DNA of 64,000 nt from IMG/VR virus record IMGVR_UViG_3300010334_000023, positions 62,001 to 126,000 of that record; one strand, given 5' to 3'. A program made the translations under genes and the position numbers. Below are positions 21,612 through 60,044 of the stretch, one piece after another (position 1 is the first letter of the stretch; each line of letters starts with the position of its first letter). The notes beneath the pieces were generated by a model, which worked only from the letters and a program-made list of their open reading frames with translations, did not search any database and had not been told where the DNA came from.

Positions 21612-21627
21612 CAAGTATTTATGGTCA

Positions 21628-21680: not shown

Positions 21681-22277
21681 TTAACCTGCTTGTGGACCGC
21701 TACCGCTAGCACGTACACGGCTTGGCATGATGTCTTGATCCTGCGTTGCGTTATCGTAGCGCACAGTCAGCGTGATCATCATCGATTCGCTGTTGCTATA
21801 GTCAAAGCTGTCATAGGCCACAGTCTCGAGATAGCAGCCTTCGAGATACCAGTTCTCGAGAACCCCACTGTCTGATCCATCTAAAGTTTCAATCTGAGTA
21901 GCAAACTTGTAGTTGATACCAGCAAGGAATGAAGTCTGTGTAAAGTGGTTCATCTGCTTCTGCAGCTGATACGATGTCAGGTAGCTTACGCTGTTTGTAA
22001 CATCATCGCGTACAGTGATTTCAATGCTCTGCCATTCTGGTTTCTGAGCCACATACATCACGTTGTTGTAGCTGTGGATCGGTGTGCTGTTGTGTTGGAT
22101 GCTGGGGCGTCCGCAGGTTGCTACCTGTGTGGTTAACGCGATAGCTGCATTCGGTGGTCCAAAACCCTGCATGCTCACCCTGAAGCGATATTTCAGCTTC
22201 GGCATGAGGATGCCACGCCCTGTGGTTCCTAATTGGGTCGGTACACCAAAACTCTGCAAGGTTGGGGTAAAGGCCAT
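21681..22277 (-). CDS. gp19: Tail tube protein
   Basis: PKLKYRFRV, KPEWQSIEITVRDD, W.LEGC, ITLTVRYD; TATAAATA at 22309-22302. Confidence 0.85.
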   Translation of the reverse strand: MAFTPTLQSFGVPTQLGTTGRGILMPKLKYRFRVSMQGFGPPNAAIALTTQVATCGRPSIQHNSTPIHSYNNVMYVAQKPEWQSIEITVRDDVTNSVSYLTSYQLQKQMNHFTQTSFLAGINYKFATQIETLDGSDSGVLENWYLEGCYLETVAYDSFDYSNSESMMITLTVRYDNATQDQDIMPSRVRASGSGPQAG

Positions 22278-23462: not shown

Positions 23463-24012
23463 TTACGTTCTCCTGTATGGGATCTATGCTTAGCTCGTTT
23501 ATGTTTAGGTTAGCAGGTTGGTCAACCATCCATTTCACATACTGTGCCGCTTGATCAAGCTCCATGCAGGTCCTCGAAGGATGCTTGTGCTGCACGTTAC
23601 TAAGCGAGCCCACGCTCAGCAATGACACCTTGGGTCCACCTCCCCAGGTGCTCAATAATCCAAGGCTGTTGCAGAAATCTCGCAGTGATTTCTTTTCATG
23701 TTGATAGGTCCAATCGCTGCCTTTTGAAGTGCGATCCGCGGTGCTACCAATGCTAATGATATGCAGCTGATGTTTGTGATCTCGAGCAACTGCGTAGACT
23801 TCTCGGAGCAGCAGCGTCTGTTGAAACTGCCACAACGCACTGTTATTGATGAAAACATCGTATTCCAGTGCCAGCTGTGCTAGATCCCTGCGTCGTTGAT
23901 CTTTATCTAGATCCCAGCCATTTGCTCTACTAACGAAGCTAGCATCTGGCCAAATGCCGTGCATTGACTGTGCTAAACCCTTAGTTGGATTACCAGTAAT
24001 CAATATCTTCAT
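23452..24012 (-). CDS. Short-chain dehydrogenase/reductase
   Basis: ILITGNPTKGLA, FINNS, ISIGS, YxxxK (YQHEK). Confidence 0.8.
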   Translation of the reverse strand: MKILITGNPTKGLAQSMHGIWPDASFVSRANGWDLDKDQRRRDLAQLALEYDVFINNSALWQFQQTLLLREVYAVARDHKHQLHIISIGSTADRTSKGSDWTYQHEKKSLRDFCNSLGLLSTWGGGPKVSLLSVGSLSNVQHKHPSRTCMELDQAAQYVKWMVDQPANLNINELSIDPIQENVNGK

Positions 24013-25325
24013 AGGTAACCCTCCATCTCTGGTACCACATCTACTAATTTCTGCGATCTAATAGCATCCATCTTGGCTGTGAATGATACAAAAATATTCC
24101 AATGAGCCTCATGTAGATCCCCACTGGTCATGTATTCGATCACGCTACTGCAGATGTTCTTGCTGCTAGACACCACGTTCTCAGGAAAACCCTGATCCAC
24201 CACCCAATCATGGAAGTCATTGAATCTATTGGTCACTAGGTCTTTGAGATCTTGTGGCAGCACCCTTATGTTGAGATGTTTGGGGTGATGTGCTACATGA
24301 TGCGTCACGATTGGTTTCTTGATGGTGTTATTGAACTTGTTGAGACCGCTCTGTCCAAGCTTCCATCTCATGAAATCTGGCATGTGCAGCACGTTGTAGG
24401 CAGTCACGGTGTAAGCGAACCAGGCCTGGACGTTTTCAGGGGCTTCGTCGACCCTGTATATGTTTCGCAAAACCTTGCTCCAATCTGACGGATATCTTTG
24501 ATATTCCTGCATAGCACCGTATCCATCTATGCTAGCTCCTATCTGTATGGTCTTGAAATGAGTCCACAGATCGAGCACTCTGCTTGGTATGCTGGTCATG
24601 TTGGTGTTATATTCAACTACCATGTTGCCAGCTGCTCCATTCTCTATGCAGCGTTCTAGGAATTCATAGTGTCGCTCTATCAGCAGAGGTTCGCCTCCTG
24701 CCATGTAGACATGCTGCACGTTGCCAGCATTGGCTTCGATCTGCTGCCAGAAACTCTCGCTGTTGTGCCATCCATAGCTGTTGCTTATCCATTTGCCATT
24801 TGAGCGATGCATATGCTCGCGACCGTGCGTGTCGTTGAACCAGTCAACATCATACAGCTTGTTCCAGTCATCATACCAACCAGTGCTGTCCTGAGGTCCG
24901 CACATGCGGCATGCCAAGTTGCAGAGGTTTCCAAATCGTAGATCATAATATACCACAGGCAACGCTTCTGTATCGATGCTGCCATCTTCTGCGGTATGGG
25001 CTAACATTTTAGTACGCTGGTTCTTCCATCTATATGTCTCATATTTCCGACGGCTATCTAAGCCAGCGTCTTCCTCGCTCTTGCACCTGCCACATTCCTC
25101 GCTCCATATGCCCTGCATCATGTTCTTTCGCATGCCTATCAACAAAGCGCTGTTGCGAGCAGAGACCAGTTCGTCAGATGCTGCGTTATAGGGTGTACCA
25201 TCTGGTTTGCGAATCACGCCCTTGTTCTGCGTGATGTTGGCCTGGCAACATACCCTGAGATCGCCGTTGCTCCTCACTGCTTGAAAGTTCCAGGGAATAG
25301 GGCACCACGTGTCTGACTTGCTCAT
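24009..25325 (-). CDS. Radical SAM protein with N-terminal SPASM/twitch-like domain
   Basis: CPIPW, RVCC, CGRC, CNLACRMC, AGGEP, YNTN, ASIDG. Confidence 0.9.
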   Translation of the reverse strand: MSKSDTWCPIPWNFQAVRSNGDLRVCCQANITQNKGVIRKPDGTPYNAASDELVSARNSALLIGMRKNMMQGIWSEECGRCKSEEDAGLDSRRKYETYRWKNQRTKMLAHTAEDGSIDTEALPVVYYDLRFGNLCNLACRMCGPQDSTGWYDDWNKLYDVDWFNDTHGREHMHRSNGKWISNSYGWHNSESFWQQIEANAGNVQHVYMAGGEPLLIERHYEFLERCIENGAAGNMVVEYNTNMTSIPSRVLDLWTHFKTIQIGASIDGYGAMQEYQRYPSDWSKVLRNIYRVDEAPENVQAWFAYTVTAYNVLHMPDFMRWKLGQSGLNKFNNTIKKPIVTHHVAHHPKHLNIRVLPQDLKDLVTNRFNDFHDWVVDQGFPENVVSSSKNICSSVIEYMTSGDLHEAHWNIFVSFTAKMDAIRSQKLVDVVPEMEGYL

Positions 25326-26221
25326 ATCCTGCCCTGCTTCCTGGCCTTGACAAGTCCGCGTATGCCCAATCGGTTGTGATCACCGACGGCAAAATCATTC
25401 CATTCTGGTCCACCGAGAGCAATGTGCATGCACTTGGTAGGCGTGATACCAACTTCGGCACAGACTTCAATCTGCGATTGCCTATATTTGGCAGGAATGA
25501 AATCAGGCGTTTTCAATTCCTGCATGAAGTATATGCCAACCTTGGCAGCTCCGAGCACTGTGTGATTGTATCTGTTCTGCTGGCATATTGGCAGATCATC
25601 GTCAATGTTGCTGTAACGAATGCCACTGCGTATGTGTCCTGTACCTGTGCCTTTGGTAAGACTAAAGCTAACGCTCTCTATAGCTGGGTGATCCACGCTC
25701 AGTTGAACATCCACACAGGTGCCTATGTATGCGCAGTCAACTATGACCGGAACCTTGAGATCTGCGCATCTGTCCAGCATGGCATAGAATCCCTGCGGTA
25801 CATCCCCTGTTGTCGCATGAGGTACGCTGACTATGACATAGTCGCCCTGCTCTATCGGACCGTCCTCTATGTGCTTCCAATCCTTAACGATGCGTGCGTG
25901 ATAGGCATATTCACCTCGATACATGCGCAAACGCCTAGAAGCGTGTCGGTGGTAAGCTTCATCAAAGCTCTGAGTGGTACCATTTATCAGATGATGCTGT
26001 TTGAAACGTTCAAGCCCTATAACCTTACTAAGACGCATGTTTCCAAGGTAGAGCTTATAGGTATCTAGATATTCTAACCTGCAATCTAATGGATCGCCGC
26101 CATCCTGGAACCATTCTTGCCACGGCAGTGATTTGAAAAGATCCACGAACCGTACGTCATAAACAGCAGCAGTCTTCTTGCTGATCATGCCGCTATCTAC
26201 TAGTGATTGCTTGTCCATCAT
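25322..26221 (-). CDS. PLP-dependent enzyme (aminotransferase fold type I-like)
   Basis: NGTTQSF, VIVDCAY, SFSLTKG....IRSG. Confidence 0.7.
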   Translation of the reverse strand: MMDKQSLVDSGMISKKTAAVYDVRFVDLFKSLPWQEWFQDGGDPLDCRLEYLDTYKLYLGNMRLSKVIGLERFKQHHLINGTTQSFDEAYHRHASRRLRMYRGEYAYHARIVKDWKHIEDGPIEQGDYVIVSVPHATTGDVPQGFYAMLDRCADLKVPVIVDCAYIGTCVDVQLSVDHPAIESVSFSLTKGTGTGHIRSGIRYSNIDDDLPICQQNRYNHTVLGAAKVGIYFMQELKTPDFIPAKYRQSQIEVCAEVGITPTKCMHIALGGPEWNDFAVGDHNRLGIRGLVKARKQGRI

Positions 26222-27582
26222 CTGTTAGTATCCTTTATCACGTCATAGAATTCTGGCAGGCTATCCTGCATGCTCTCAGATCGTATTTTATCCAACCTAT
26301 CAGTGAATCTCCAAAACTTAGGCATGAGCTCTGCCTGATCCGCAGCTAGCATAAAACGTTGCCACTGATCGAGATGCTGCGTGATACCAGCTATCAGCTC
26401 ATCTCGGCGAGCATGATCATCGTCATAGAGTTCGCAAGCAAGCTTGATCAGCTCAGGCAATCTGCGGGCAAAATGCTCTACTACTTTCTGTTTTTCTGCC
26501 GGTGGCAAGGTTCTCGCATTTAGATGCTTTGGTCCATACAGAGGATGAAAGAATATCAGCGGACTGTTTGGTGTGAAACCAAACCTCTTGTACTTTCGGC
26601 GCATGAACCATTCCAGAGTGTCAGGTATGTACCAGATGTTGTATATCATGATCGTGCTGGCGATCCAGACCACAAAATTGATATCTGTGGCAGAATCTAT
26701 CCTATCTAGGTTCTCTTCGATCATGTGCCATCGGCAGGGGTGTCGTATGTAGTCATTGACCGGTCCAATGCCGTCAACGCTGGCTCCGATCCTAACTTCT
26801 CTAAAATGCCGCCACAGATCCCAGGCCACCGGTGGTATCTTTACTACGTTGCTGTTGTATTCGATGATGATGTTCTTGCTGATACCCATATCGATGCAGC
26901 GTTCGAGGAACTCCCACTGTTGATCAATGAGCATGGGTTCGCCACCAACTGTGTGTATGTGCTGTATGTTTTTGGCATTCCTAGAGATGTGATCCCAGAA
27001 CAGAGGTGACTCATACCAAGTGTAACCATCTGTGTCTGGTACTAATCTGCCACTATCATCTCTTGACAGTGTTACCTTTCCAAAGCTTTCATCATATTGG
27101 TGAGTGTTCCACAGGGCTACATAGTCTTCGTACCAAAAATTGCTTTCTGTTGGGCTGCACATCCTGCATTTCAGGTTACACTTGTTGCCAAATCTCACTC
27201 CGTAGTGCATGACTGGGCAAGACTCATTGGATATCTGTCCATCATCACAGGTCAGCTGCTTGGCCATATCAACAGTGAACCTATCAGACCACAGCGTGGT
27301 TTCTGTCTGGTTCCTGCTTATCAAACCACCTTTGCTTTCATTCTCGCAGCGTCTACAAGCCGGATTCCATCGGCCTGCCAGCATGTCCAAACGTATCTGC
27401 CGCAGTAAGGAGCTGTTGCGAGCATCTTCTATCATGTCTAACGTGGCGTTGAAGGTGCTACCGTTTGATTTGCGTAAGAGCCCATTATCAGCACCCTGCT
27501 GGCTATGCGAGCACACGCGCATGTCTCCGTTATTGCGGATATCTAGGCTGATCCAAGGCAGTGGGCACCAATTACATGACAT
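26218..27582 (-). CDS. Radical SAM protein with N-terminal SPASM/twitch-like domain
   Basis: CPLPW, CRRC, CNLKCRMC, GGEP, YNSN, ASVDG; paralog of 24009..25325. Confidence 0.9.
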   Translation of the reverse strand: MSCNWCPLPWISLDIRNNGDMRVCSHSQQGADNGLLRKSNGSTFNATLDMIEDARNSSLLRQIRLDMLAGRWNPACRRCENESKGGLISRNQTETTLWSDRFTVDMAKQLTCDDGQISNESCPVMHYGVRFGNKCNLKCRMCSPTESNFWYEDYVALWNTHQYDESFGKVTLSRDDSGRLVPDTDGYTWYESPLFWDHISRNAKNIQHIHTVGGEPMLIDQQWEFLERCIDMGISKNIIIEYNSNVVKIPPVAWDLWRHFREVRIGASVDGIGPVNDYIRHPCRWHMIEENLDRIDSATDINFVVWIASTIMIYNIWYIPDTLEWFMRRKYKRFGFTPNSPLIFFHPLYGPKHLNARTLPPAEKQKVVEHFARRLPELIKLACELYDDDHARRDELIAGITQHLDQWQRFMLAADQAELMPKFWRFTDRLDKIRSESMQDSLPEFYDVIKDTNR

Positions 27583-27987: not shown

Positions 27988-30900
27988 TTATACGTTGATG
28001 TTGTTGCTACCGTTTGGTAGCGGATCTGCGTCATTCAACACCCTGATTGGTATGTAGATGAACTCGATCGCCTTTTCTGGCTTGATAGCTATATCAACCC
28101 AAAGCTCGTTGCGATCGATCCTAATCGGTGTGTTGTTGCTGCTATCGCACACGACTGAGAAGTCGTAGAGCGCACGCAATCCAACCAAGTTACCCATGAA
28201 GCTGTTAAACGCTATGGTAACTGCCTGCCTGGTCTGAGCGTCGTTTGGCTCAAACAAGAACGGCTGTGCCAACTGCCTTAGGTTGTAAACCAAGTAGTTG
28301 ATCAGGCGCGCAACATTGACTCTGTCCAGGCTTGTGGTGATTGGATCCAAGGTCTTCTGTCCATATACAACCAAACCACGATTTGGTATGAACGTGATCG
28401 GATTGATCTTGTTCACATACAGCACGTCGCGCTGTCCTTGGTTTAGACTGACTGGCTGATATGTACCGTCTGACTTGAGGTAACCAACGCTCAATGCGCC
28501 AGCAACCAAACCACGATTGAAACCAGCTGGAGCAAACCAAGGATAAGCTACTTGGTCATTGTAAGCATATACCGTGAGTGCCATGGTGCTTGGCGGCACA
28601 AACACTTGGTTTCCGTCCAAGTTCACTTCCAGTGCCCAGGGATAGTAAACTGCTGCGTATGATGTGTGGGTTATCAAACCATCAATGCTGTCATAAGCTG
28701 CGTTGTTGGCATTGGTAGCCCACTGCTGCAGGCTAGTGGTATCAGCTGGTAGCTCTCCAGGAGGATCTGCTAGGATGAAAGCTATCTGTTGTATGTCAAC
28801 ATTGAGCAGGTTCATCTCAGCCAAGCATTCTATGTAACCCGGTGTTGCTATCAAGTTGTAGAAGATCGAATCACCGCGTATGGCTTGGTTGCTAGCAAGC
28901 GAAGCATTAAGCGCTCTAAAGACCATAGCACGCTGCGCATCTGGTCCCATGTAAGGGGTGCCATTTGGACGGTTACCGCTAGCTGTGACCCAGCAATCCG
29001 GATCATAACCTTCAGAAGTGTTCACATCTGGGAAATAATCCATATAGTACTGCTTGACATTGTAGGTGCTATAACGAGTGTTGAACAGCAACATACCAGC
29101 TGGATAAAGCTCTGCGTTAGGCGCATCGCTATCCACATAGTTGCTGACTACCATCGCGCTAGGAGCTTGGCTGCCATTGGTCTTGCCATTGTTATTGTAT
29201 CGCGCGTCAGTGAATATGATGCCCGAAGGACTGCTGTGATTGGTGTTATCGATCAGTGTCCATGATCCAGATGATCCATCGTAGCGGTATAGCACTGGAT
29301 AGGGTGTCACGCTGCTGTCTACCCAGATGTCGTTGGTAACCAATGGACTAAGGTCGCTCTGTGTGCTAGGCATGCTGCCATCTATGATTGGACCATTTGG
29401 ATCTGTAGCTGGATAGGCATTCCTATAACCCTGCCAGATCTGGCCGCTGCCGACCATAATATCAACCTGTAGGTAGGTGTTATACCATAGCGTACCGTCT
29501 GCCGGAGGTCCTACTGGATTGGTGGTGCTCGGTGTATACATCAGTGTTACCCAAGCAGAACCGTCCCATTGATAAAGAACTGTCTTGGCCGTAGCAGGCA
29601 TGTCGCCGTCATTGTTATAACGAGCATACACTGTACCGTAGGTCTTGCTAGAACCAAAAGCAGCATTGGCTACAGCATCGCTGCTGTACATAGGCACAGT
29701 GTTGGTCAGAGGATTGATATTCTGCTCCACCCATATCGTACCATTGTACTTCTTAACTACCATGTTAGCGCCGCGATCGGCTGGTGTGGTATTGATCCAC
29801 ACGTTGGTAGCAGCAGTCTGTGCCAGTGTGCTAGGTACTGTAAGAGATGGATAGTAACCCTGATAAACCATCTGTCGTCCAAACACATAGCCAACTTGTA
29901 TACCTGCGCTGTTAAGAGGAGTTCCGCTGATATCCTTCAGTATGAACTGTGTACCGTTTGTGTTGGTGATTGTGAGATGGTTGCCAGTAGACACGCTAGC
30001 CACGATCGGACCACTTGGGAAAGCAGCATTGATAGCAGAGACCACACCAGCCAACGTGTTGTTAGGTGATGCCGGCACGTAAATCGTGGTAGCTATTCCT
30101 GTGCCAGGATTGATGCTGAATGTGTCAGCAGTTAGATATGCCATGCTAACAGTGAATGTAGCGTTGGTGCCGCTGCCCCCGGTGACGCTCACCGGATTGG
30201 TAGGTGCCACCGTGTAGTTGCCAGGATTGGTCACGGTCACTGTGCCAACACCCCAGCCAATAGTCACTGTGGCATTAGTACCGTTGCCGCTGGTTGATGA
30301 AGGTGTCACAGGATTAGCTGGGACGTTGGTGATGTGCTGTCCGGGCTGTCGTATGGTCAAGGTAACAATAGAGCCGCCGCCTCCGATGCTGGCCACTTCT
30401 AGTATGGTCGGAGTCACATAGGCTGGACCATCAAAAGTAAGCGTATCGCCTTGAGCATAACCAGTTCCAGTAGCAGATATGCTAGCCGCTACAGCCTGTA
30501 TGCTAGCAACAGTCAGCACACCCGTTACGCTGTGGGTACCACCAACGACATTAAGCGTGTCTCCTGGTGCGTAACCAGCACCAGGCGCAACTACAACCGG
30601 CGCTGGCTGTGTTTGTCCTGCTATGTTGCCGTTTGATATCTCAAGCGTAGCAGCTGTGAATGTTGGATTAGCCACAGTACCTGTCACTGCTCCATAGTAA
30701 GTCTGCGTGGTTGGCATACCTGCAGTCTGCCATGGGTGTGTGGTATTTGTTTCTGTGGTTATGTCATGGAAGAAAATGTCAGTAGCATCATAGTTGGTGA
30801 TTACCAAGAAGTTGCTGCTACCAGAAGTGGCAATGCTAGCCAAGGCATTGAAACTATTGGCATCAAGAACCGAATTGATCGAAGTTACAAAGCTGCTGAG

Positions 30901-32076
30901 AGAAGTTCCCGCCACAGTGATGGTCACAGGCACTGCATCACCAATGCTTATAGTGCATTGGTTGCCTATAGTGAAGGTTGGATTGCTGACTGTGCCCTGC
31001 ACCACACGCGGTGCTGCTTCGCGCCATCCCCAACCTGGATAATCCATGTCAGTGCTGCCAACCAAGAACCACCAAGCGTCTGTGTTACCGTTAAGCGTGG
31101 TCTGTTCGATCTTCTGCCAGATCTTGTTCTCCATTAATTCGGTAGTCGGATCAGTGCTGTATGCATCAACTATGAACTCACCAACTGTGCCGTAAGCATG
31201 TATTGGTAATATGGTGTTAGTTGGCTCCGGAGTCATAAATCCGATATCCTCTAACACGTATATGTTAGAATAAAGCAGATCAATCATCGTGGTGATATCA
31301 GTGCCGGTGATGCGTAGATAGTAGAGATCTTCTATCGTAGCTACTGTTGGATCAGGCTTGCCGGTGCGAGCATAGATCGTAGCGCTAATGCCAGAGTTAT
31401 GTATGGCGTTGTTGTTGATAGCACTTGCTACATCACTGAGGCTCATGCCAACTGTCATGGGCACTGTAGTTCCATTAATCACCAAGTTACCAACATGAGT
31501 AACGGCAGGAGTGCTGGCACTGGTCAGTCCAACTGATGCCTGTACCATTATCTCGAGATCAGTTGACTTTGAAAGTGTCAACGGAGTCTTGGCGCTCCAG
31601 CTCAATGCGCTGTTAGCGTTCCCATTGCTGCTGAATATGCCCCAAGTGGTGTTTGCTGTGTCAAGCCAATATTGGTTGAGTGAAGGAGGACCTGCTGGTT
31701 CAGTGGTGCTTGGCACCATCTGCTTTAGATCAACATCCGCACGCAATACATATGCAGTGTTTGCTATACCGAGATATTGATATGCTGTGAACAGACCCAG
31801 CTCATTCAGCTGATTACCATAGTCAGGCGTGCCAGCGGTGGTGTAGAAGGTTGGAGTTCCAAACGTCTGCAGCAGATCACGTTGGCTGCTGATTAGATAA
31901 AGTTGGTTAGCATTAGCAGCAGTAGTACCGGGCGCGTAAACACCTGAGCTACCAGGTTGTAGCTTATTAGCTGCCGTAGCAATGAGAATGAGCGGGACGG
32001 TTCCAGCACCTGCGCTAGCATATACGCTTTCATCTGTGACTGTGACGCTTACGCCGGGTGATACTAGGGTTGCCAT
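27988..32076 (-). CDS. gp18: Tail sheath protein with large inserted domains (1362 aa)
   Basis: LVSPGVSV, WFAPAGFNRG, YGQKTL, RVNVARL, FEPND, IKP.KAIEFIYI. Confidence 0.95.
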   Translation of the reverse strand: MATLVSPGVSVTVTDESVYASAGAGTVPLILIATAANKLQPGSSGVYAPGTTAANANQLYLISSQRDLLQTFGTPTFYTTAGTPDYGNQLNELGLFTAYQYLGIANTAYVLRADVDLKQMVPSTTEPAGPPSLNQYWLDTANTTWGIFSSNGNANSALSWSAKTPLTLSKSTDLEIMVQASVGLTSASTPAVTHVGNLVINGTTVPMTVGMSLSDVASAINNNAIHNSGISATIYARTGKPDPTVATIEDLYYLRITGTDITTMIDLLYSNIYVLEDIGFMTPEPTNTILPIHAYGTVGEFIVDAYSTDPTTELMENKIWQKIEQTTLNGNTDAWWFLVGSTDMDYPGWGWREAAPRVVQGTVSNPTFTIGNQCTISIGDAVPVTITVAGTSLSSFVTSINSVLDANSFNALASIATSGSSNFLVITNYDATDIFFHDITTETNTTHPWQTAGMPTTQTYYGAVTGTVANPTFTAATLEISNGNIAGQTQPAPVVVAPGAGYAPGDTLNVVGGTHSVTGVLTVASIQAVAASISATGTGYAQGDTLTFDGPAYVTPTILEVASIGGGGSIVTLTIRQPGQHITNVPANPVTPSSTSGNGTNATVTIGWGVGTVTVTNPGNYTVAPTNPVSVTGGSGTNATFTVSMAYLTADTFSINPGTGIATTIYVPASPNNTLAGVVSAINAAFPSGPIVASVSTGNHLTITNTNGTQFILKDISGTPLNSAGIQVGYVFGRQMVYQGYYPSLTVPSTLAQTAATNVWINTTPADRGANMVVKKYNGTIWVEQNINPLTNTVPMYSSDAVANAAFGSSKTYGTVYARYNNDGDMPATAKTVLYQWDGSAWVTLMYTPSTTNPVGPPADGTLWYNTYLQVDIMVGSGQIWQGYRNAYPATDPNGPIIDGSMPSTQSDLSPLVTNDIWVDSSVTPYPVLYRYDGSSGSWTLIDNTNHSSPSGIIFTDARYNNNGKTNGSQAPSAMVVSNYVDSDAPNAELYPAGMLLFNTRYSTYNVKQYYMDYFPDVNTSEGYDPDCWVTASGNRPNGTPYMGPDAQRAMVFRALNASLASNQAIRGDSIFYNLIATPGYIECLAEMNLLNVDIQQIAFILADPPGELPADTTSLQQWATNANNAAYDSIDGLITHTSYAAVYYPWALEVNLDGNQVFVPPSTMALTVYAYNDQVAYPWFAPAGFNRGLVAGALSVGYLKSDGTYQPVSLNQGQRDVLYVNKINPITFIPNRGLVVYGQKTLDPITTSLDRVNVARLINYLVYNLRQLAQPFLFEPNDAQTRQAVTIAFNSFMGNLVGLRALYDFSVVCDSSNNTPIRIDRNELWVDIAIKPEKAIEFIYIPIRVLNDADPLPNGSNNINV

Positions 32077-42197: not shown

Positions 42198-43336
42198 TAG
42201 ATCAAGTTACTGCGGTGAGATTTCCTAGCGAATGGCAGATCAAGAGGCAGCCAGCACGGCCCAATATGCTACGCATTGACTACTGCGGCGGCATGAAGTT
42301 TGACGAAAACTTTGACTGGGACAACATCTGGTACGATTGTGTGCAGTTGAACGATACACAGACCATACTGATCGGTCCGCCGATCTACGAAGGCAAGCAA
42401 TGGTTTGCTGCGAACGCAGGCTTCGCAGATCGGCATGGACGCGCACTGGACTATCAGTTTTATGATCTGGACAGGGTCAGCTATACGTTAGTGCATACCA
42501 AAGGCATAGACGAGTCACTCATCATGATCAGCAAGAAAGCTGATCCAGTGCACATCGAAGTCCATCACAATGATGGATATTTTAACGGCCACAAGACCAT
42601 GGTAACCCTGCAGAAAGATAACCCAATACAATGGATTGAGCAGTGGATGGACTATCACTATCGTGTGCATGGTATAGATGGTTTCTTGATCTATGACAAT
42701 ACCAGCAGCAAGTACACGGTCAACGAACTCGAGAGCAAACTAAGCAGAGATTATCTAAAGCTGAAGATAGTACCGTGGCCTTATCCATATGGTCCGCAGG
42801 GCAGCGACAACGCACCCTGGGACAGCGACTACGGACAGTACTGCATGCTTGAACATGCCAAATATAGGTATCTCAGCCATGCGGCGTTGGTTTTGAACAA
42901 TGACATAGACGAACTGATAGTAACCAAGGGTCCTTCTTTGGACAAGATCCAATCACAGTTAGAATCTGGGCCATATCACTGCCTAGCATACCAAGGACGT
43001 TGGATTGAACCTCACGATGTACCACGTAACAAAGGCGCATATGAAGTACCATTTGAATCAAGATTGTTCAGTGATTATTGCTGCACAGATGCCAATGACA
43101 AGCGAGGTATCGGACACAAGTGGATGTTGGTACCACAGAAAAACATCAACTATCAGTGGTTAGTTCATCGCATAGCCGGACCATATGGTGTGAGCGAGGA
43201 TCTGTTCTACGGACATTATCTTGCTATGAACACCAATTGGAGCTGGGAACGCGACAAATACACTGGCAATGTCAAGGATCTAACACCTGATCCGTGGCTA
43301 CATACAGCGCTGCAGAAGATTGAGGTATATAAATGA
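42194..43336 (+). CDS. Glycosyltransferase (GT92/GT2-like)
   Basis: W..W.DYH...GIDGFLIYDN.S, NNDIDE. Confidence 0.7.
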   Translation: MIDQVTAVRFPSEWQIKRQPARPNMLRIDYCGGMKFDENFDWDNIWYDCVQLNDTQTILIGPPIYEGKQWFAANAGFADRHGRALDYQFYDLDRVSYTLVHTKGIDESLIMISKKADPVHIEVHHNDGYFNGHKTMVTLQKDNPIQWIEQWMDYHYRVHGIDGFLIYDNTSSKYTVNELESKLSRDYLKLKIVPWPYPYGPQGSDNAPWDSDYGQYCMLEHAKYRYLSHAALVLNNDIDELIVTKGPSLDKIQSQLESGPYHCLAYQGRWIEPHDVPRNKGAYEVPFESRLFSDYCCTDANDKRGIGHKWMLVPQKNINYQWLVHRIAGPYGVSEDLFYGHYLAMNTNWSWERDKYTGNVKDLTPDPWLHTALQKIEVYK

Positions 43337-44022
43337 AAAAGCTTTTGGTAGTAACAGGCCCGCAGGGTTCTGGCAATCACATGTGGAGCAAGGTTCTAAG
43401 TGGTACTCCGGGTGTGCGAGGCTGGGAACAGTTGCAGAATGAATACTGGGTTGGACACGGTAACGAGCCGTTCGCACTGATATGGCAAGATCCCAAGCTG
43501 TTCCATGAGATAGACTGGGAACCAGGTAATTATGTTACCAGCATCAGCTGTCCAACTGTTCCAGTGGGAGGACCTACTGCTCCCAGCGTAGAACCACCCT
43601 ATGGCGATTTCATGGCTAATGCTAAGCAAGCAGGATTTGACGTCAAGCTGGCAATCATAGGACGAGACAAGAACATCCTAGAATTCCAACAGAACAGATT
43701 GCGAGAAAACCATAGCACACCAAGATTCTTAAAACACATCGAAGTGCTGATGTCCTATGATCCTGTTTTCATCAGCACAGAATTACTGTATCTCTATCAA
43801 GACCACTATCTCAGACAACTGTCAAAGCTCTTGGATTTTCCAATCAACAATACCAATCTACCGGAGATACTTAAAGACAATACCAATCTCAAATATCTAC
43901 ACCCAGTAGAATCTTATTGGCTAGATGAACACTGTAGGACCAATTCTAGAAAAAACGGCGATCCAACTAACCCTTATGTGTATCAACCAAAAAAGAACTC
44001 CGGAGGAGAAACAAACACATGA
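43333..44022 (+). CDS. P-loop / sulfotransferase-like protein
   Basis: VVTGPQGSGNHMWSK; later IIGRD. Confidence 0.5.
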   Translation: MKKLLVVTGPQGSGNHMWSKVLSGTPGVRGWEQLQNEYWVGHGNEPFALIWQDPKLFHEIDWEPGNYVTSISCPTVPVGGPTAPSVEPPYGDFMANAKQAGFDVKLAIIGRDKNILEFQQNRLRENHSTPRFLKHIEVLMSYDPVFISTELLYLYQDHYLRQLSKLLDFPINNTNLPEILKDNTNLKYLHPVESYWLDEHCRTNSRKNGDPTNPYVYQPKKNSGGETNT

Positions 44023-44978
44023 AGAAATTGCTGTTCGTTGTACACAGATATGCTCCGTTCCCAGGTGGTAGCGAATACTATGTGCAGGCCATGGCGGAAG
44101 AAGCACTGAGCAGAGGACACCAAGTAGCTGTGTTTGCTGGTGAACACCAAGGTGATCACAATGGCGTGCATGTAACCAGCGATCCTCAGATACTTGGTCG
44201 GCCCTGGGATCTCATAGTAGTGCACGGCGGCGATGTTGGTTTACAGAACTTCGTGCTGACCAATGTGCTGAGAATACCAAGTCCCATGCTTTACATGCTG
44301 ATACTGCCTAGCAACAGCGAAACATGCCTACATGCTCTCAGAGAATGTGCTTACCTTGGTTGGAGCACACCAGATGACATCAACCACATACGCAAGCATG
44401 GACAGAGCGATAAAGCTAAACGTGTGCGTCATGGTATCAAGCTGAACGAAAGCATAGGTAAACCAGGATTCAAAGACAAGCATGGTATAACCAAACGCAT
44501 GTTTCTCAGCTGCGGTGGCTATTGGCCCAACAAGAAGATGCGAGAGCTTGCTGATGTGTTTACCAGAGCAGAGCTTGACGATGCAGTGCTAGTCACTACT
44601 GGTTATGACAATCGCATGGATCTAATGCCTGCAGCCAGCGATACAGTGATGCCATTGATGATAGATGACAAAGCAGAAGTGCTCAATGCTATTGCCGAAG
44701 CTGATTGCTACCTCATGCACAGCAACCAAGAAGGATTTGGTCTAGTAATATTAGAGAGCATGCTCAATGAAACGCCGTGGATATCTCGTCAGATCGCAGG
44801 TGCTGCTATGCTCAACAAGTTTGGTCAAACCTACCAAACAGATAGCCAATTGATCAACTTGCTCAAGAATTTTGACCCAGTAACCTATGATTTGTCAGCT
44901 GCTAAACAGCACATACTGGATAATCATACCATACGCAGCACAGTTGATGACATAGAAGCGATCATCACTTCTTCTTAA
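44019..44978 (+). CDS. GT4 (GT-B) glycosyltransferase
   Basis: YAPFPGGSE, NKK, ADCYLMHSNQEGFGLVILESM..PW. Confidence 0.88.
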   Translation: MKKLLFVVHRYAPFPGGSEYYVQAMAEEALSRGHQVAVFAGEHQGDHNGVHVTSDPQILGRPWDLIVVHGGDVGLQNFVLTNVLRIPSPMLYMLILPSNSETCLHALRECAYLGWSTPDDINHIRKHGQSDKAKRVRHGIKLNESIGKPGFKDKHGITKRMFLSCGGYWPNKKMRELADVFTRAELDDAVLVTTGYDNRMDLMPAASDTVMPLMIDDKAEVLNAIAEADCYLMHSNQEGFGLVILESMLNETPWISRQIAGAAMLNKFGQTYQTDSQLINLLKNFDPVTYDLSAAKQHILDNHTIRSTVDDIEAIITSS

Positions 44979-55106: not shown

Positions 55107-58100
55107 TTAATAGACCACAGCAGCAACCTTGCTGAATCCGTCGCTCATGACCCTAACCTGACGATCTTCAACTAGCAGCAGCGATTCGATGTTGTTATTG
55201 AGCTTGTTGAGCGCTGCCATCATCTCCTTGTGTCGCTGTTCAGGACTGTGTGGCCCGTTGCTAGTAGTACCAGTGCCGCCTGCTGTTGGATTGGTAGCCA
55301 CTGGACCACCACCAGACAGACCTGGAGCGGCTGTGGCACCAAAGGTTGAGCTGATCACGTTTGGTATGGCTAGGGTAGCCTGCCTGTTAATGAGATCAGA
55401 CAAGCTAAACAGATTGCTGAGGCTTTCGATAGATATGCTGTCAGCAAACGCATCAACTAGATAGCTGTAAGCGTCAGCAAAATAGTAGAGCCTGTCAGCT
55501 ACTAGCGGTATGTTACCGGTTTCAGTCTCGAGATTTGCCAAGCGAGCCATTATCTCGTTGCTGCCTAGCAGCCAATTTCCCATTAGCACAAAAGCACCAT
55601 CACGGAAGATGAGGTCTAACATTGCCAAAGTATCCAACGCTGGTTTGCTAAAAATCCCAGTATTGATCAGATCAAATGCTCTGGCATAAGCTTCGCCAAA
55701 ACGTCCCATGACTTCAGATGCTGCGTTCAGAGGCTCGGCAAGCTCACCAAATAATGCTATTTGCTTCCTGATAGTATCGCTAGCTAACAACCTGTCACCC
55801 TTGAACAAAAGCTTGAGCTTGTCCATAGTGTCAAACGCTGTTTGACTAATGGATGCATTGTTAAGCGCATAAATTACACGGGGATAGGCATCAGCAAACT
55901 TGCTCATAGCATCGCCTGCTGCCTTGAGAGGCTCTGCTATCTCACCAAAGCGCTTGAGCTTGGTTATGGGATCGTCTGAGAAGAAGCTGCTTATCCAACC
56001 AGTTAGGCTACCTAGGCTGTTAACCACCTCTCCTGCACCCATAGCAGCTAGTCCAGCGCCAATCTTGATCATACCGTTTCCGGTCTGTTCTAGCTTGGTA
56101 CCATCAATGTCAGTGAATGACTTGAGACCTTCAGCCATCTTGGGCAAGGCTGCGCCCATGATCCACGTTGCACCAGCTATTCCTGCGCCTATCAACGTGA
56201 TGCTACCACCAAGTATTGCTGCACCCAACAGAATATATGGATCTGCCATGGCTTTGAGACCGATACTTAAACCTTCAAGTATGGCGCCTAGTGCCACACC
56301 AAGGCCTTTGCCTATACCACCTACTATAGCAGCTATTGCCTTGCCTAGACCTTCGCTGATGCTAGCGATGGCCTTGCCTAGCGTATCAGCCAGAGATACT
56401 AGTACGCTGCTTAGCTTGCCAAGCACATCAGCTAACAGGGAAGTCATGCCTCTGATAGCATCTCCCACTGCACCACCTATGCTCTTGATGCCATCAGCTA
56501 GGCTGGCACCCATGCTGGACATGGATTTGGTAGCACCGCCTGCGGCATCTGCGGCAGCCCCAGCTACGTTGCCAAGACCTGGAACGTTAGCTAGAGGTTT
56601 CAATCCAGGCACGCTGAACAGATTCTTGACTAGGCCGGCACCGGATCTCAGCGTCTTGACCACTCCCCCCAGCAGTTTGTAAATTATGCCACCACTCAGT
56701 ATGGCCGCAACAGTGCTGGTCACTACTTCCTGCGTGGTCATCGGCGTGCTGTCTTGACTGTCGCCTCCAGCTTTATCTGGCGTGGCATTCATACCAAAGA
56801 GAAAGCCAAATGTGCTTTTGATATGGTCTCCCAACCAAGTGAACCATTTACCCACGGTCTCAGCTGGTTTGGTAACCAGATCATAGAGACCTTCAAAGGT
56901 AGTGGTGAGTATATCAGCTGTTTTTTCAATCACTTTGAAAAGAAACTCTATGGGTCCGGCAACCAGTGCCAGCACCTTGGCGGACATCAGGGTGAAACCA
57001 TTGTTCAGAGTGTTGAGGCTTCTGCTTACTGCTTTCTGTGCGTCAGCTATGGCTTGTGCATCAGCAGGTGTGGGCTGCCCCTCTTTGATGGCTTTCTGAG
57101 CTTGTATGAAACTAGTAGCGTACTTCTGTAGGGTCTCAGCTGCTTCTTTCTGACCTATCAGTCGAAGCTCATTGGCTCTCTGCTGGAAGGTCTGGCTCAT
57201 CATAGCCAGATCCTCGTTCTGTGCCTGTACGTTACCTGCCATGGTATCTGCTGACAGCTTCTGTATCTGTTCCAAACCTCCAGGGAACATGTTCATGGCT
57301 TTGAACACATCCGGCATGACCTTGCTGAGACCACCAAATCCCGTGGGACTGTTAAGCTGAGCAAACATGGTCTGTAGCTCAGCTGCTGTGTCAGAACCTA
57401 CCACATTGAGCTGAGCTAATCCTTTGCGTGCCGCATCCTGCAGCTCTGGGGCAAGGCTGTTTATCAGCAGCTGAACGTCGGGTTTCTTCAGCTGCTGTTT
57501 TATTTCTGCATCAAGCTGTTCGCGTCTCTTGCCAGTGCTCTGGCTGAGCCTGTTGAGCTCCTGACCATATTCTATAGCACCTTTTTTAAGCTGATCGTCC
57601 GTGATTCGACCAAGCTGACCGGATGTACGCATCTGATCTGCATAGCTGAGGAACAGTTCTTGCGACTCTTCCATGCTCATACCAAGGTTGCTGCCGTTAT
57701 TGGTTAGCTTGGCAAATTCCTTGCCTAGCTGAGCAGTCTTGTTGATGCCCATGTAAGTGACCACTTGGCCATGTTTGGTCAGCACCTTGCTAAGCGTCTG
57801 CAGATCAAGTCCAGTATCATTGCTGGCATGTGCTAGCTGGCTGAGACCACCGCTGAACACCAAACCGTTGTCATAAAGGCTCATGACACTGTCTGCAAGC
57901 TGAGTGCCTCGCTTCCATATGATATCAAAAACCTCAGCTGCGAGCGTGACCCTGCCTAGCATTGCTGAGAGAGCTGTGTTACCCTTGCCAAGGTTCCAGC
58001 TAAAACTGTCTGCTGCGTTGGCTATGCCCCCAAACAGGCTGCGGCTGTCCATGCTGCTGAGGCTGTCAAAGGTCTTTGCCGTGAAACCCAGGGTCCTCTT

Positions 58101-58367
58101 GAGATCTTTGGTGCTAGCCGCTAGATCGAGATCAGCACCAGTGTTCTTGTTGACAGCTTCTGTGTTCTTGTTGAGATCCTCGGCTACCTCGCCTAGATCC
58201 TTGATAATATCAGCGTATTCTTTGTCGTTCTTGGCGACGCTCTTGGCGACGCTCTTGGCAATGTTCCGCAATACGGCATTGCTGTTGTCGCTGCTGGCTA
58301 GCAGTGATCGCAGCGTAGCATCCTTGGCCCATTTGGGATAATACTCTTTATCGAGTTCGTCAGACAT
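55107..58367 (-). CDS. Tape-measure-like protein
   Basis: 1086 aa, helical A/G/L-rich with hydrophobic segments and repeats; divergent from baseplate hub gene. Confidence 0.7.
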   Translation of the reverse strand: MSDELDKEYYPKWAKDATLRSLLASSDNSNAVLRNIAKSVAKSVAKNDKEYADIIKDLGEVAEDLNKNTEAVNKNTGADLDLAASTKDLKRTLGFTAKTFDSLSSMDSRSLFGGIANAADSFSWNLGKGNTALSAMLGRVTLAAEVFDIIWKRGTQLADSVMSLYDNGLVFSGGLSQLAHASNDTGLDLQTLSKVLTKHGQVVTYMGINKTAQLGKEFAKLTNNGSNLGMSMEESQELFLSYADQMRTSGQLGRITDDQLKKGAIEYGQELNRLSQSTGKRREQLDAEIKQQLKKPDVQLLINSLAPELQDAARKGLAQLNVVGSDTAAELQTMFAQLNSPTGFGGLSKVMPDVFKAMNMFPGGLEQIQKLSADTMAGNVQAQNEDLAMMSQTFQQRANELRLIGQKEAAETLQKYATSFIQAQKAIKEGQPTPADAQAIADAQKAVSRSLNTLNNGFTLMSAKVLALVAGPIEFLFKVIEKTADILTTTFEGLYDLVTKPAETVGKWFTWLGDHIKSTFGFLFGMNATPDKAGGDSQDSTPMTTQEVVTSTVAAILSGGIIYKLLGGVVKTLRSGAGLVKNLFSVPGLKPLANVPGLGNVAGAAADAAGGATKSMSSMGASLADGIKSIGGAVGDAIRGMTSLLADVLGKLSSVLVSLADTLGKAIASISEGLGKAIAAIVGGIGKGLGVALGAILEGLSIGLKAMADPYILLGAAILGGSITLIGAGIAGATWIMGAALPKMAEGLKSFTDIDGTKLEQTGNGMIKIGAGLAAMGAGEVVNSLGSLTGWISSFFSDDPITKLKRFGEIAEPLKAAGDAMSKFADAYPRVIYALNNASISQTAFDTMDKLKLLFKGDRLLASDTIRKQIALFGELAEPLNAASEVMGRFGEAYARAFDLINTGIFSKPALDTLAMLDLIFRDGAFVLMGNWLLGSNEIMARLANLETETGNIPLVADRLYYFADAYSYLVDAFADSISIESLSNLFSLSDLINRQATLAIPNVISSTFGATAAPGLSGGGPVATNPTAGGTGTTSNGPHSPEQRHKEMMAALNKLNNNIESLLLVEDRQVRVMSDGFSKVAAVVY
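58229..58259. repeat. 12-bp tandem repeat (AKSV) in tape measure N-terminus
   Basis: TCTTGGCGACGC x2 + TCTTGGC. Confidence 0.7.
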
Positions 58368-58468: not shown

Positions 58469-59332
58469 ATGGTCAACAATCCACTACAGAAGCATTTTAG
58501 GAGACCAGCACTCTGGATCAAGCTGCCCACGGGTGGACGCTGGTACCAAGATGGCAGCGTCAGCATCAATGGCGAAGGCCAGGTGCGCATCTTTGGTCTA
58601 ACTGCCAAGGACGACATCATGCTCAACACGCCAGACGCGCTGTTGAACGGCCATGCGCTGGAAACGGTCATACAGAGCTGCGTGCCAGATGTCAAGAACG
58701 TCAAGGGACTCATGCAGCCAGATCTAGATTCCATCTTCCTTGGTATAAAAGCAGCCACAAACAATGGTCAGTTTGAGATCGAACGCAAGTGCGAAGCCTG
58801 TGGTCACGAAAACAACTTCGCAGTACAGTGCAACCATCTCATAGATCAGACCACGTTCGTGGAAGACAGTGACTGTGTGGTGATGATTGGCAGCGACATG
58901 CGAGTGCACATCAAACCATATAGCTATGAGATGCGCACGATTCTCATACAGAAGCAGCTGGAAGAACAGCGGACTCTCACTGCTATTGAACAGGACAATC
59001 AGATAACCGATGACATGCAGCGTGCCGGAATATTAGCACAGAGCATAGAAAAACTCACAGAGCTTACTTTCAAGCTGGTAGCCAACAGCATAGTCAAGGT
59101 TGATATCATAGCAGCAGAACCTATCACAGTGACAGATCAGCAGCACATCACAGAATGGCTGCTGAATACCGACAAGGTAACAGCAGATGCTGTGATCAAT
59201 GCTGTCAATGAGCTCAATCGCGTTGGGCCACCAAAAGAAACACCGGCACAGTGCGAGCAATGCGGACACGGTTGGACCGAGAAGCTGAGCTTTGATCCCG
59301 CGCTTTTTTTCACGCGACTATCGCCACCATGA
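58469..59332 (+). CDS. gp26: Baseplate hub / tail assembly protein (gp26-like)
   Basis: NPL..FRRP..IKLP, T.KDDI.L.TPDALLNG, two CxxC pairs, ..FDP..FF. Confidence 0.78.
   Translation: MVNNPLQKHFRRPALWIKLPTGGRWYQDGSVSINGEGQVRIFGLTAKDDIMLNTPDALLNGHALETVIQSCVPDVKNVKGLMQPDLDSIFLGIKAATNNGQFEIERKCEACGHENNFAVQCNHLIDQTTFVEDSDCVVMIGSDMRVHIKPYSYEMRTILIQKQLEEQRTLTAIEQDNQITDDMQRAGILAQSIEKLTELTFKLVANSIVKVDIIAAEPITVTDQQHITEWLLNTDKVTADAVINAVNELNRVGPPKETPAQCEQCGHGWTEKLSFDPALFFTRLSPP
59305..59311 (+). other. Candidate -1 frameshift slippery heptamer T TTT TTC
   Basis: In-frame X XXY YYZ; the -1 frame is open and in frame with ATG 59329. Confidence 0.55.
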
Positions 59333-59541
59333 ACCCTGACCTGATTGGTACCATGCTAGAAACCATGGTTAAAAATCAGGATCTCATAGAACAGGACGTG
59401 TCATCCTTGGTGTTCCACATGCAGGGTGGATTGGACTATGATGATGCTTGGCTGCTTACCACTGAGCAACGTCGCTTAATGGCCAAGATCATACAGAAAC
59501 ACTACGATGATCAGAACCCTAATAAGAAAAATCTATTGTGA
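59329..59541 (+). CDS. gp51-like baseplate assembly protein / possible frameshift extension of gp26
   Basis: 70 aa; L.FHMQGG..Y..AW.L...R; ATGA overlap, no SD. Confidence 0.6.
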   Translation: MNPDLIGTMLETMVKNQDLIEQDVSSLVFHMQGGLDYDDAWLLTTEQRRLMAKIIQKHYDDQNPNKKNLL

Positions 59542-59544
59542 TTG

Positions 59545-60040
59545 ATCCTGTGATGAGCGTAGCTCATCAGTTAGCTGAGCTAAAGCTCATCTAACACGTT
59601 TTCTTTAATAATGCTTGATTAGTTATTCTGGTCGATTAGCAGCCACATCACTCCCTTTGCCAGGGAGTGACCATGTGAAACATCATTCTGGTTCGAACGA
59701 CACCACTGCCCTTTCATCCTTGCTTGTCAGCAGCTGGCGGAGTGCCTAATTCCAGCTTGCGGATGAGATCCTCTGAGGAGTCTATACCTCAACACTCGGT
59801 TATGGGAGTTTACCCACGCTACATGATGGTCAAACGGCCAGACGCATCATGCATCACAGCTGGCCAGTCGCACGGCGGCTGTGATCCTTTTCCTGATTTC
59901 CTTGGCAGGGGCCTAGCAGATAGAAATCCCCGTTCAGTGAGTGTGATAACCTTGCCGTTATCCTTTCACTGAGTGGTAACACCACCATTATGGAGCCAAT
60001 ATGGATTAGTAGGTTACAACTGTGAGGTAACCCTGGAGCC
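59545..60040 (-). ncRNA. Candidate large structured ncRNA or structured cis-element, unclassified
   Basis: ~500 nt without a credible ORF, at least 9 stems; GCAA-capped loops favour the minus strand. Confidence 0.5.
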
Positions 60041-60044
60041 TATT

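Follow-up and report, generated by a model that had tools for sequence, protein, structure and literature searches.

The locus and its features

The region analyzed here lies within a 64-kb window (the whole 64,000-nucleotide stretch of DNA that was examined) of the 216-kb record IMGVR_UViG_3300010334_000023, from a giant freshwater phage. It contains a plus-strand gene of the T4 gp26/gp51 family that ends CTT TTT TTC...TGA and overlaps a second open frame in the -1 register. Genetic code 11 was used throughout. The features of the locus are as follows.

55107..58367, minus strand: divergent neighboring gene of 1086 aa, probable tape measure protein
58469..59332, plus strand: ORF1, 287 aa, ending ...SFDPALFFTRLSPP before its stop codon, inferred short product, a gp26/gp51-family baseplate-hub assembly protein
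59293..59295, plus strand: TGA in the -1 frame, the 5' limit of the stretch (59296-59332) in which a shift can yield the long product
59304..59310, plus strand: T7 homopolymer
59305..59311, plus strand: heptamer T TTT TTC in X XXY YYZ phase on Phe280-Phe281, proposed site of the -1 shift
59311..59541, plus strand: -1-frame extension, 76 codons from CAC 59311 plus stop TGA 59539-59541
59314..59380, plus strand: predicted RNA hairpins downstream of the heptamer, one at 59314-59324 and a larger stem-loop at 59340-59380
59329..59331, plus strand: ATG in the -1 frame overlapping the ORF1 stop (ATGA), a possible secondary start for a free 70-aa peptide

The initial annotation had claimed a probable -1 frameshift joining ORF1 to the downstream frame, and each of its statements on the sequence is confirmed. 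After TGA 59293-59295 the -1 frame reads SRAFFHATIATMNPD... without a stop to TGA 59539-59541. The predicted long product therefore has 357 aa (ORF1 residues 1-281 plus HATIATMNPDLIG...KKNLL), with a tryptic junction peptide that would begin LSFDPALFFHATIATMNPDLIG. The 16 nt before ATG 59329 (CGCGACTATCGCCACC) hold no Shine-Dalgarno (SD)-like purine run, and a peptide started there would lack the first 8 residues of the conserved domain described below.

ORF1 is assigned to Pfam PF12322 (1.9e-11; 44.5 bits against a curated cut-off of 24.5) and to phrog_150 (4.7e-17), and is the only PF12322 match in the record. On the same Pfam model, T4 gp26 scores 8.8e-64 and gp51 scores 3.9e-52. Alignment with its relatives shows the conserved motif NPDAL.NG, two CxxC pairs (C108/C111 and C262/C265), and a C-terminal FDPxxFF motif, with C262, C265, F280, and F281 invariant and C108 and C111 nearly so (90% or more). 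In contrast, the 70-aa ORF and the 81-aa open frame gave nothing in Pfam and PHROG scans, a direct nucleotide search with the region found no phage relatives, no PDB relative was found by sequence, and Rfam and tRNA scans of the downstream ORF-free stretch were empty.

The proposal in the initial annotation that the locus adjoins the tape measure gene is only partly confirmed. The gene at 55107..58367 lies on the opposite strand, has no Pfam or PHROG hit, and has no significant BLASTP match to T4 gp29. It is tape-measure-like by composition, with a helical N-terminal part and a Gly/Ala-rich hydrophobic center, by its nearest named clusters in the ESM Atlas, which are mostly tape measure proteins (scores 0.94-0.95), and by the annotation of the orthologous neighbor in vB_Ec-M-J. 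In CBB the neighbor is annotated as a virion structural protein, and the CBB virion mass spectrometry table lists CBB_251 (29 peptides; PMC5259590), assuming that the numbering of the paper matches that of the record. In Atu_ph07, the predicted tape measure gene is not adjacent but lies 15 genes away.

Conservation of the heptamer and of the -1 frame

Within the window, the T7 tract is the only run of 7 or more T or A. Among 67 ORFs of at least 150 aa (22,195 codons) there are 28 in-phase XXXYYYZ heptamers (0.13% per codon), such that a 12-codon overlap would hold one about 1.5% of the time. Another candidate, A AAA AAG at 43989-43995, was set aside because the downstream gene has a strong SD of its own.

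The stronger argument is conservation. The identical in-phase heptamer is found on an invariant Phe-Phe in 73 of 75 distinct homologous loci (about 30% protein identity). It is present in 13 of 14 sampled cultured phages, Atu_ph07, Phosso, Paride (PA5oct group), PHA46, XbC2, Kaldavass, fHe-Yen9-04, GAP32, XaC1, CBB, and vB_Ec-M-J among them, and in 64 of 66 distinct IMG/VR loci, the other two of which carry A AAT TTT. In the same genes Phe is encoded by TTT 73% of the time and other FF pairs use all four codon pairs, so that the expected frequency of T TTT TTC at an xFF position is only 0.068. All seven positions of the heptamer carry 2.0 bits in the 73 distinct relatives, while neighboring wobble positions carry 0.1-0.5 bits. 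Interestingly, in some relatives a -1-frame stop sits directly 5' of the heptamer and the ORF1 stop lies one codon 3' of it, which confines the shift to this site. All-pyrimidine X_XXU_UUY motifs belong to the shift-prone classes in E. coli (PMC4066793).

The -1 frame is open for 65-129 codons in every relative and encodes a conserved domain of about 76 aa, nearly gapless in 61 aligned relatives, that begins at the slip site (FF[RHQ]xRLL..PEEI...WYMRGG...ER...; mean column identity, 45%), whereas the zero-frame tail after FF consists of 1-11 variable codons. The domain usually has no start codon of its own. In 59 of 75 loci the first ATG lies more than 12 codons into the domain or is missing; Paride and one further locus have no ATG at all, and the nearest relative (45% amino acid identity) has none until 20 codons after the Phe-Phe. 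Only 13 of 75 relatives have an ATG abutting the ORF1 stop. Strain variation points in the same direction, as single-nucleotide differences are almost all third position in ORF1, and the two within the extension, at 59520 and 59536, are synonymous in the -1 frame.

Natural in-frame versions of the long protein also exist. A profile of the extension gave 759 database hits, and 20 of the top 150 are proteins of 319-351 aa that carry the domain at their C terminus, joined through ordinary codons such as CTC TTT CGT. These align end to end with the conceptual fusions (hhalign probability 100%, E 3.6e-91, 337 columns), and one of them is predicted to fold as a single compact unit (pLDDT 96.2, pTM 0.92).

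The evidence for a stimulatory element is less clear. The predicted fold of 59312-59400 has -23.7 kcal/mol (z -3.3, with 0 of 200 shuffles as stable), and the 70 nt downstream in 75 relatives have a mean z of -2.0, but RNAalifold on 51 codon-aligned relatives found no consensus structure (consensus energy 0), and no conserved upstream SD-like element is visible. The site would have to work on its own, as the lambda G/GT site is reported to do.

Relationship to T4 gp26 and gp51

T4 gp26 and gp51 are themselves paralogues within PF12322, and gp51 homologues also carry PF28602 in precomputed tables. Neither ORF1 against gp26 or gp51 nor the extension of the window against gp51 gives a significant direct BLASTP match, and identity of ORF1 to gp26 is about 17% in alignment; only profiles and intermediates show the relationship. 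The short product ends a few residues after the invariant FF, as gp26 does (KEFFELL), and the long product appears to continue as gp51 does (VF followed by KLLVNPDEI...ERGFVLKLIEK). Compared directly, the similarity between the jumbo-phage extension and the gp51 C terminus is weak (P 0.001-0.009, probability 4-34%), although above all 50 shuffled controls. Through intermediates, the LPCS28 extension aligns without gaps to gp51 residues 200-244 (BLASTP 6e-4), and hhalign of the LPCS28/LG08 extensions gives E 4.9e-5 against the gp51 C terminus and 2.7e-4 against the jumbo-phage extension. The conceptual fusions align colinearly to the end of gp51 (E 1.1e-4). The jumbo-phage extension is about 20 residues longer than the gp51 tail. 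Additionally, the model of the in-frame homologue matches predicted structures of gp26- and gp51-type proteins in BFVD. The gp51-like label given in the initial annotation may thus hold in the specific sense that the extension corresponds to the C-terminal tail of gp51.

Gene counts in complete genomes support the frameshift. Atu_ph07, Paride, GAP32, vB_Ec-M-J, PHA46, LG08, and LPCS28 each have the heptamer, the extension, and one PF12322 gene, whereas T4 and Moon have non-slippery FF codons and two PF12322 genes, 26 and 51. As a search for loci related to T4 gp26 returned only close relatives, controls were taken from GenBank records; T4-type gene 26 uses GAG/GAA TTC TTT, TTT GTT, and similar codons at this position. 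T4 uses two divergent genes and no recoding, and its gene 26 also has an internal-start product, 26', for which no counterpart was seen here. In tandem PF12322 gene pairs of uncultivated phages, a version without the extension and a version with it are encoded by two adjacent genes. The long one is colinear with the conceptual fusion of the window, its junction has a single Phe and no T-run, and the upstream paralogue has lost the CxxC pairs.

A proposed two-product gene and its alternatives

Taken together, these comparisons support a programmed -1 ribosomal frameshift, to which we assign a probability of roughly 0.85 in the absence of protein or ribosome-profiling evidence. Most ribosomes would read ORF1 to its TGA and make the 287-aa gp26-like protein, while a minority, probably a low percentage, would slip back one base when the two tRNA-Phe on TTT TTC re-pair with TTT TTT, and would continue for 76 more codons to make the 357-aa protein with an added helical domain that may correspond to the gp51 tail. 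It can therefore be hypothesized that the pair replaces, from a single gene, the two paralogous T4 proteins gp26 (short) and gp51 (long), with the frameshift fixing their ratio. T4 literature lists gp26 and gp51 as hub assembly chaperones (PMC3004832), and it is inferred from this that the two forms act as assembly chaperones of the hub and tape measure and are absent from the virion, an absence stated in the literature only for T4 gp51 (PMC3004832).

The initial annotation had compared the pair to lambda G/GT and P2 E/E+E' (Xu, Hendrix, and Duda 2004; Levin et al. 1993; as summarized in PMC5009743). The resemblance is one of expression design, in that two products share an N-terminal body and the longer one is made, here by inference, by a -1 shift on a heptamer a few codons before the stop of a tail-assembly gene. 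It is not one of homology: no tail-assembly-chaperone family hit was obtained, there was no PDB fold match beyond generic helical hairpins, and the body of about 280 aa carries two zinc-ribbon-like CxxC pairs. Nor does the gene lie immediately upstream of the tape measure gene in the same operon.

The signal appears to have gone unannotated in all 15 inspected phage records that carry it (Rak2-like, PA5oct-like, Atu_ph07-like, LG08, and LPCS28) and in hundreds of metagenomic relatives. Every GenBank record inspected annotates a separate small ORF, where it annotates anything, the long product is missing, and gene callers start the small ORF anywhere between profile positions 1 and 35. No report of a frameshift in this family was found in literature searches that covered few subscription journals. 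If correct, our analysis would extend frameshifted tail assembly chaperones, already known from siphoviruses and P2/Mu-type myoviruses, to T4-type baseplates through a non-homologous protein, and would link genes 26 and 51, whose roles in hub assembly have stayed unclear for decades, to a single two-product gene. It could further be speculated, with about even odds, that the gp26/gp51 family is the tape-measure and hub chaperone of T4-type tails, the counterpart of lambda G/GT, and that one gene read in two frames is the ancestral state, as kept in jumbo phages, LG08, and LPCS28. Gene duplication would then have replaced the frameshift in T4-type Straboviridae and in an uncultivated lineage, hard-wiring the short and long forms. 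Such a history would give the "catalytic" gp51 a defined origin and would show that the chaperone frameshift principle arose in, or spread to, a second and structurally unrelated protein family.

The alternative that survives best, although unlikely, is that the same long product arises by transcriptional slippage, with RNA polymerase adding one U on the T7 run. A homopolymer of strictly conserved length is present, and transcriptional slippage is a known alternative route for such genes (PMC5009743). Against this, efficient bacterial transcriptional slippage probably requires runs of 8-9 or more in most cases, and no relative has lengthened the run. The second Phe is TTC in all 73 loci and never TTT, and two relatives have only T5 but keep a canonical ribosomal heptamer, A AAT TTT, in phase. 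The run is always in X XXY YYZ phase, although the FF codons force that phase anyway. The data cannot separate the two routes, as the metatranscriptome contigs that hold parts of the locus skip 59196-59705.

It is similarly unlikely that there are two separate proteins and no frameshift, with the 70-aa ORF translated from ATG 59329 by termination-reinitiation at the ATGA overlap. This overlap exists in the window, so a free peptide made by reinitiation cannot be excluded here; the same or a TAATG overlap is found in 13 of 75 relatives, and FF is invariant at the protein level even in T4 gp26. However, conservation of the domain begins at the heptamer, upstream of this ATG, which has no SD before it and no equivalent in most relatives. 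The synonymous positions of the heptamer are invariant although the same genes use TTC for only 27% of Phe codons and T at 34% of third positions, T4-type gene 26, without the extension, encodes the position with non-slippery codons, and natural in-frame fusions exist.

Finally, a sequencing or assembly error in a true T8, or a chance alignment of frames, is all but excluded, since T7 is kept without indels in contigs from three independent metagenome runs, two of them from strains about 2-4% diverged, and in 73 distinct loci from isolates and metagenomes sequenced by many groups, while the in-frame lineage has a different junction and a second paralogue beside it. Such errors do occur, as one public record, Escherichia phage CMSTMSU (marked UNVERIFIED), has T6 and a split hub gene.

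Sequence and gene content of the locus

The sequence features at the proposed frameshift locus are the following, numbered in the window, with frames given relative to ORF1.

58469-59332, + strand: ORF1, 287 aa, ending ...SFDPALFFTRLSPP and a stop, with the last codons CTT TTT TTC ACG CGA CTA TCG CCA CCA TGA
59304-59310: run of seven T's
59305-59311: heptamer T TTT TTC, in X XXY YYZ phase
59293-59295: TGA in the -1 frame, after which this frame stays open to 59541 and reads SRAFFHATIATMNPDLIG...KKNLL and a stop
59329: ATG that overlaps the ORF1 stop (ATGA), with no Shine-Dalgarno-like sequence before it

The initial annotation had described the same heptamer, open -1 frame, and ATG, and every one of its sequence statements is correct. 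The T run is the only run of 7 or more T or A in the 64-kb window, and in-phase slippery heptamers occur at only 0.13% of codons in the window's long ORFs. A classical A AAA AAG heptamer also lies in phase at 43989-43995, 11 codons before the stop of an ORF at 43333-44022, and the next gene (44019-44978), a GT4 glycosyltransferase, is in the -1 frame with an ATGA overlap. As that gene has a strong SD (GGAGGAG, 44002-44008), however, this second arrangement is probably due to chance.

ORF1 matches Pfam PF12322 (T4_baseplate, 1.9e-11) and PHROG 150 (baseplate hub). PF12322 covers both T4 gp26 (8.8e-64) and T4 gp51 (3.9e-52), and these two classical hub-assembly genes are therefore paralogues. 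The small downstream ORF has no family hit. The window comes from a 216-kb viral record from freshwater metagenomes, estimated to be 42% complete, and its cultured relatives, which share only about 30% protein identity, are jumbo myoviruses, namely Atu_ph07, the PA5oct group, and Rak2-like phages such as GAP32 and CBB. The genomic context is T4-like, with portal, major head protein, prohead protease, sheath, tube, and gp46/47-type nuclease.

Conservation of the slip site and of the -1 frame

To place the heptamer in a comparative context, the homologous locus was retrieved from 14 cultured phages and 80 IMG/VR contigs, which gave 75 distinct loci with a complete locus. Of these, 73 have exactly T TTT TTC, in phase, on an invariant Phe-Phe of the motif [FY]DPxxFF, 1-11 codons before the stop. 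The other two (L023, 2313-2549, and L027, 919-1155) have only five T's and a zero frame ending NFS and a stop, but here an in-phase A AAT TTT heptamer would give the same ..NFF-IRSLI.. long product. One further record (Escherichia phage CMSTMSU, 2076-2357 of our locus L018), marked UNVERIFIED, has six T's and a hub gene annotated in two pieces, which probably reflects homopolymer sequencing errors in that record.

The conservation exceeds what codon usage would predict. In the same genes Phe is TTT 73% of the time and third positions are T 34% of the time, so that the expected frequency of this heptamer on xFF is 0.068, and other FF pairs in these genes use all four codon combinations. Information content is 2.0 bits at each of the seven positions, against 0.1-0.5 bits at nearby wobble positions. 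In several loci a -1-frame stop lies directly before the heptamer and the zero-frame stop lies one codon after it, in which case the shift can only occur on the heptamer.

The -1 frame encodes a real domain. It is open for 65-129 codons in every locus, and from the slip site on, the peptide is conserved and nearly gapless (FF[R/H/Q]xRLL...PEEI......WYMRGG..Y.EA..LS..ER..I...I..N.ETTKK..LPFF), with a mean column identity of 45%, which is higher than in the body of the protein, whereas the zero-frame tail after FF is short and variable. Start codons in the -1 frame are scattered: two loci have no ATG at all, in 59 of 75 the first ATG is more than 12 codons into the domain or absent, and only 13 have an ATG at the ORF1 stop, as the window does.

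A profile search of 1.84 billion proteins with the extension found 759 hits, most of which are small called ORFs that begin at any profile position from 1 to 35. Interestingly, 20 of the best 150 hits are proteins of 319-351 aa that carry the domain at their very C-terminus. These natural single-frame proteins align end to end with the conceptual frameshift products (hhalign probability 100%, E 3.6e-91, 337 columns), and their junction uses ordinary codons and a single Phe. One of them, folded with an alignment (A3), gives a compact predicted model (pLDDT 96.2, pTM 0.92) in which the extension forms helices 256-331 of the same fold.

Population data are in line with these observations. Contigs of three independent freshwater runs keep T7, and in two strains that are 2-4% diverged, SNPs in ORF1 are almost all at third positions, while the two SNPs in the extension (59520 and 59536) are synonymous in the -1 frame. 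There is no SNP in 59234-59519 in two diverged strains (runs X7 and X8), although they differ about once per 30 nt in 58486-59233, and the slip site and most of the extension are unusually invariant at the DNA level. Beyond the extension, at 59542-60044, lie about 500 nt with no ORF of 100 aa or more, where indels occur between strains (59597, 59722, and 59924). This stretch is present in a metatranscriptome contig (59706-60200) and has no Rfam or tRNA hit, and GAP32, CBB, and XbC2 also have about 800 unannotated bases at the same place.

Gene number and relationship to T4 gp26 and gp51

Complete genomes that carry the heptamer and the extension (Atu_ph07, Paride, GAP32, vB_Ec-M-J, PHA46, Rhizobium phage LG08, and Cronobacter phage LPCS28) hold exactly one PF12322 gene, whereas T4 and Moon hold two, genes 26 and 51. 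LG08 and LPCS28 (the latter in Straboviridae) are non-jumbo T4-like phages of 150 and 183 kb whose single PF12322 gene ends GAT TTT TTC, with an open -1 frame of 65-72 codons (1866-2057 of the LG08 locus, L117, and 1866-2042 of the LPCS28 locus, L118) whose peptide resembles the gp51 tail. The frameshift arrangement is therefore not confined to jumbo phages. T4-type gene 26 encodes the aligned position with non-slippery codons (GAG TTC TTT, GAA TTT GTT, AGT TTC CTT, and others); it is followed by gene 25, and gene 51 is divergent. T4 gene 26 also carries an annotated internal-start product, 26' (the C-terminal 95 aa; 2803-3090 of the T4 locus, L010), so that T4 also makes two products from gene 26, by a different mechanism.

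The contigs that carry the in-frame long form have a second PF12322 gene without the extension directly upstream. In these uncultivated phages (L101, 51-2051, and L104, 820-2744), the tandem pair consists of a short gene lacking the CxxC pairs and a long one with the extension in frame. The short gene of L104 still ends TCT TTT TTC AAT GAC TAA, with a -1 stop right after the heptamer, and it is conceivable that this is a relic slip site.

T4 gp26 ends three residues after FF, like the window's short product, whereas T4 gp51 continues ...VF-KLLVNPDEIFTFYQ...MIPAERGFVLKLIEKDKQ, like the long product. The similarity of the extension to the gp51 tail is weak when tested directly, with hhalign giving P 0.001-0.009, although this is better than all 50 shuffled controls and in colinear position. 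Intermediates strengthen it. The LPCS28 extension aligns without gaps to gp51 residues 200-244 (BLASTP 6e-4), and the LPCS28/LG08 profile matches both the gp51 tail (E 4.9e-5) and the jumbo-phage extension (E 2.7e-4). The whole conceptual fusion aligns colinearly to the end of gp51 (E 1.1e-4).

Proposed mechanism and possible function

The initial annotation had inferred that a -1 frameshift joins the gp26-like ORF to the gp51-like ORF. Its observation is confirmed and its interpretation is supported, and we put the probability at about 0.85 that a programmed -1 shift at 59305-59311 yields a 357-aa gp51-like long form beside the 287-aa gp26-like short form, possibly with an extra free 70-aa peptide in this particular phage. 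The best reading is a tandem -1 slip of the two tRNA-Phe on U UUU UUC. In E. coli, UUY in the A site and all-pyrimidine heptamers are among the shift-prone classes (PMC4066793). No conserved stimulator was found: the region downstream folds more stably than shuffles (z -3.3 in the window, mean z -2.0 over 75 loci), but hairpin positions differ between loci, and RNAalifold finds no consensus. A low percentage for the shift is only inferred, from heptamer-only sites such as lambda G/GT.

Transcriptional slippage on T7 would give the same protein and is unlikely but not excluded, as the one metatranscriptome that holds parts of ORF1 and of the downstream region does not include the slip site. Two observations speak for the ribosomal route, namely that the run is never lengthened, because the second Phe is always TTC, and that the two T5 loci keep a canonical heptamer.

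The expression design matches lambda G/GT and P2 E/E+E', but the protein does not, with no family hit and no fold match to them or to anything in the PDB beyond generic helical hairpins, although predicted viral structures of gp26- and gp51-type proteins do match. The gene is a member of PF12322 that appears to work like a G/GT pair but is not one. None of the 15 GenBank records inspected that carry the signal annotates a joined product, and full-text searches of an incomplete literature collection, including the PRFect paper and the 2016 recoding review, turned up no mention of a frameshift in this family; what appears to be new is the occurrence of an already known expression design in PF12322.

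When these results are set beside what is known of T4, a role in tail assembly can be hypothesized. Leiman et al. list T4 gp26 and gp51 as hub assembly chaperones and state that gp51 is required for assembly but absent from the final particle (PMC3004832), and many GenBank records now call gp26 a "baseplate hub assembly chaperone." The divergent neighbor of ORF1 (55107-58367, 1086 aa) has no family hit but is tape-measure-like, with a helical N-terminal part and a Gly/Ala-rich hydrophobic center, and its nearest named clusters in the ESM Atlas are mostly tape measure proteins. It is annotated as tape measure in one relative and as "virion structural protein" in CBB, and the CBB virion mass-spectrometry table lists CBB_251 with 29 peptides, which is this neighbor if the paper's numbering follows the record's. 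By analogy with G/GT, it could be speculated that the short and long forms escort the tape measure and hub, with the extension recruiting another component.

Inside the tail gene block of the window, three ORFs with radical-SAM-domain PHROG hits (22335-23462, 24009-25325, and 26218-27582; - strand) sit between the tube gene (21681-22277) and the sheath gene (27988-32076), the latter of which is unusually long (1362 aa), and a second tube-like ORF of 574 aa lies at 19890-21614.
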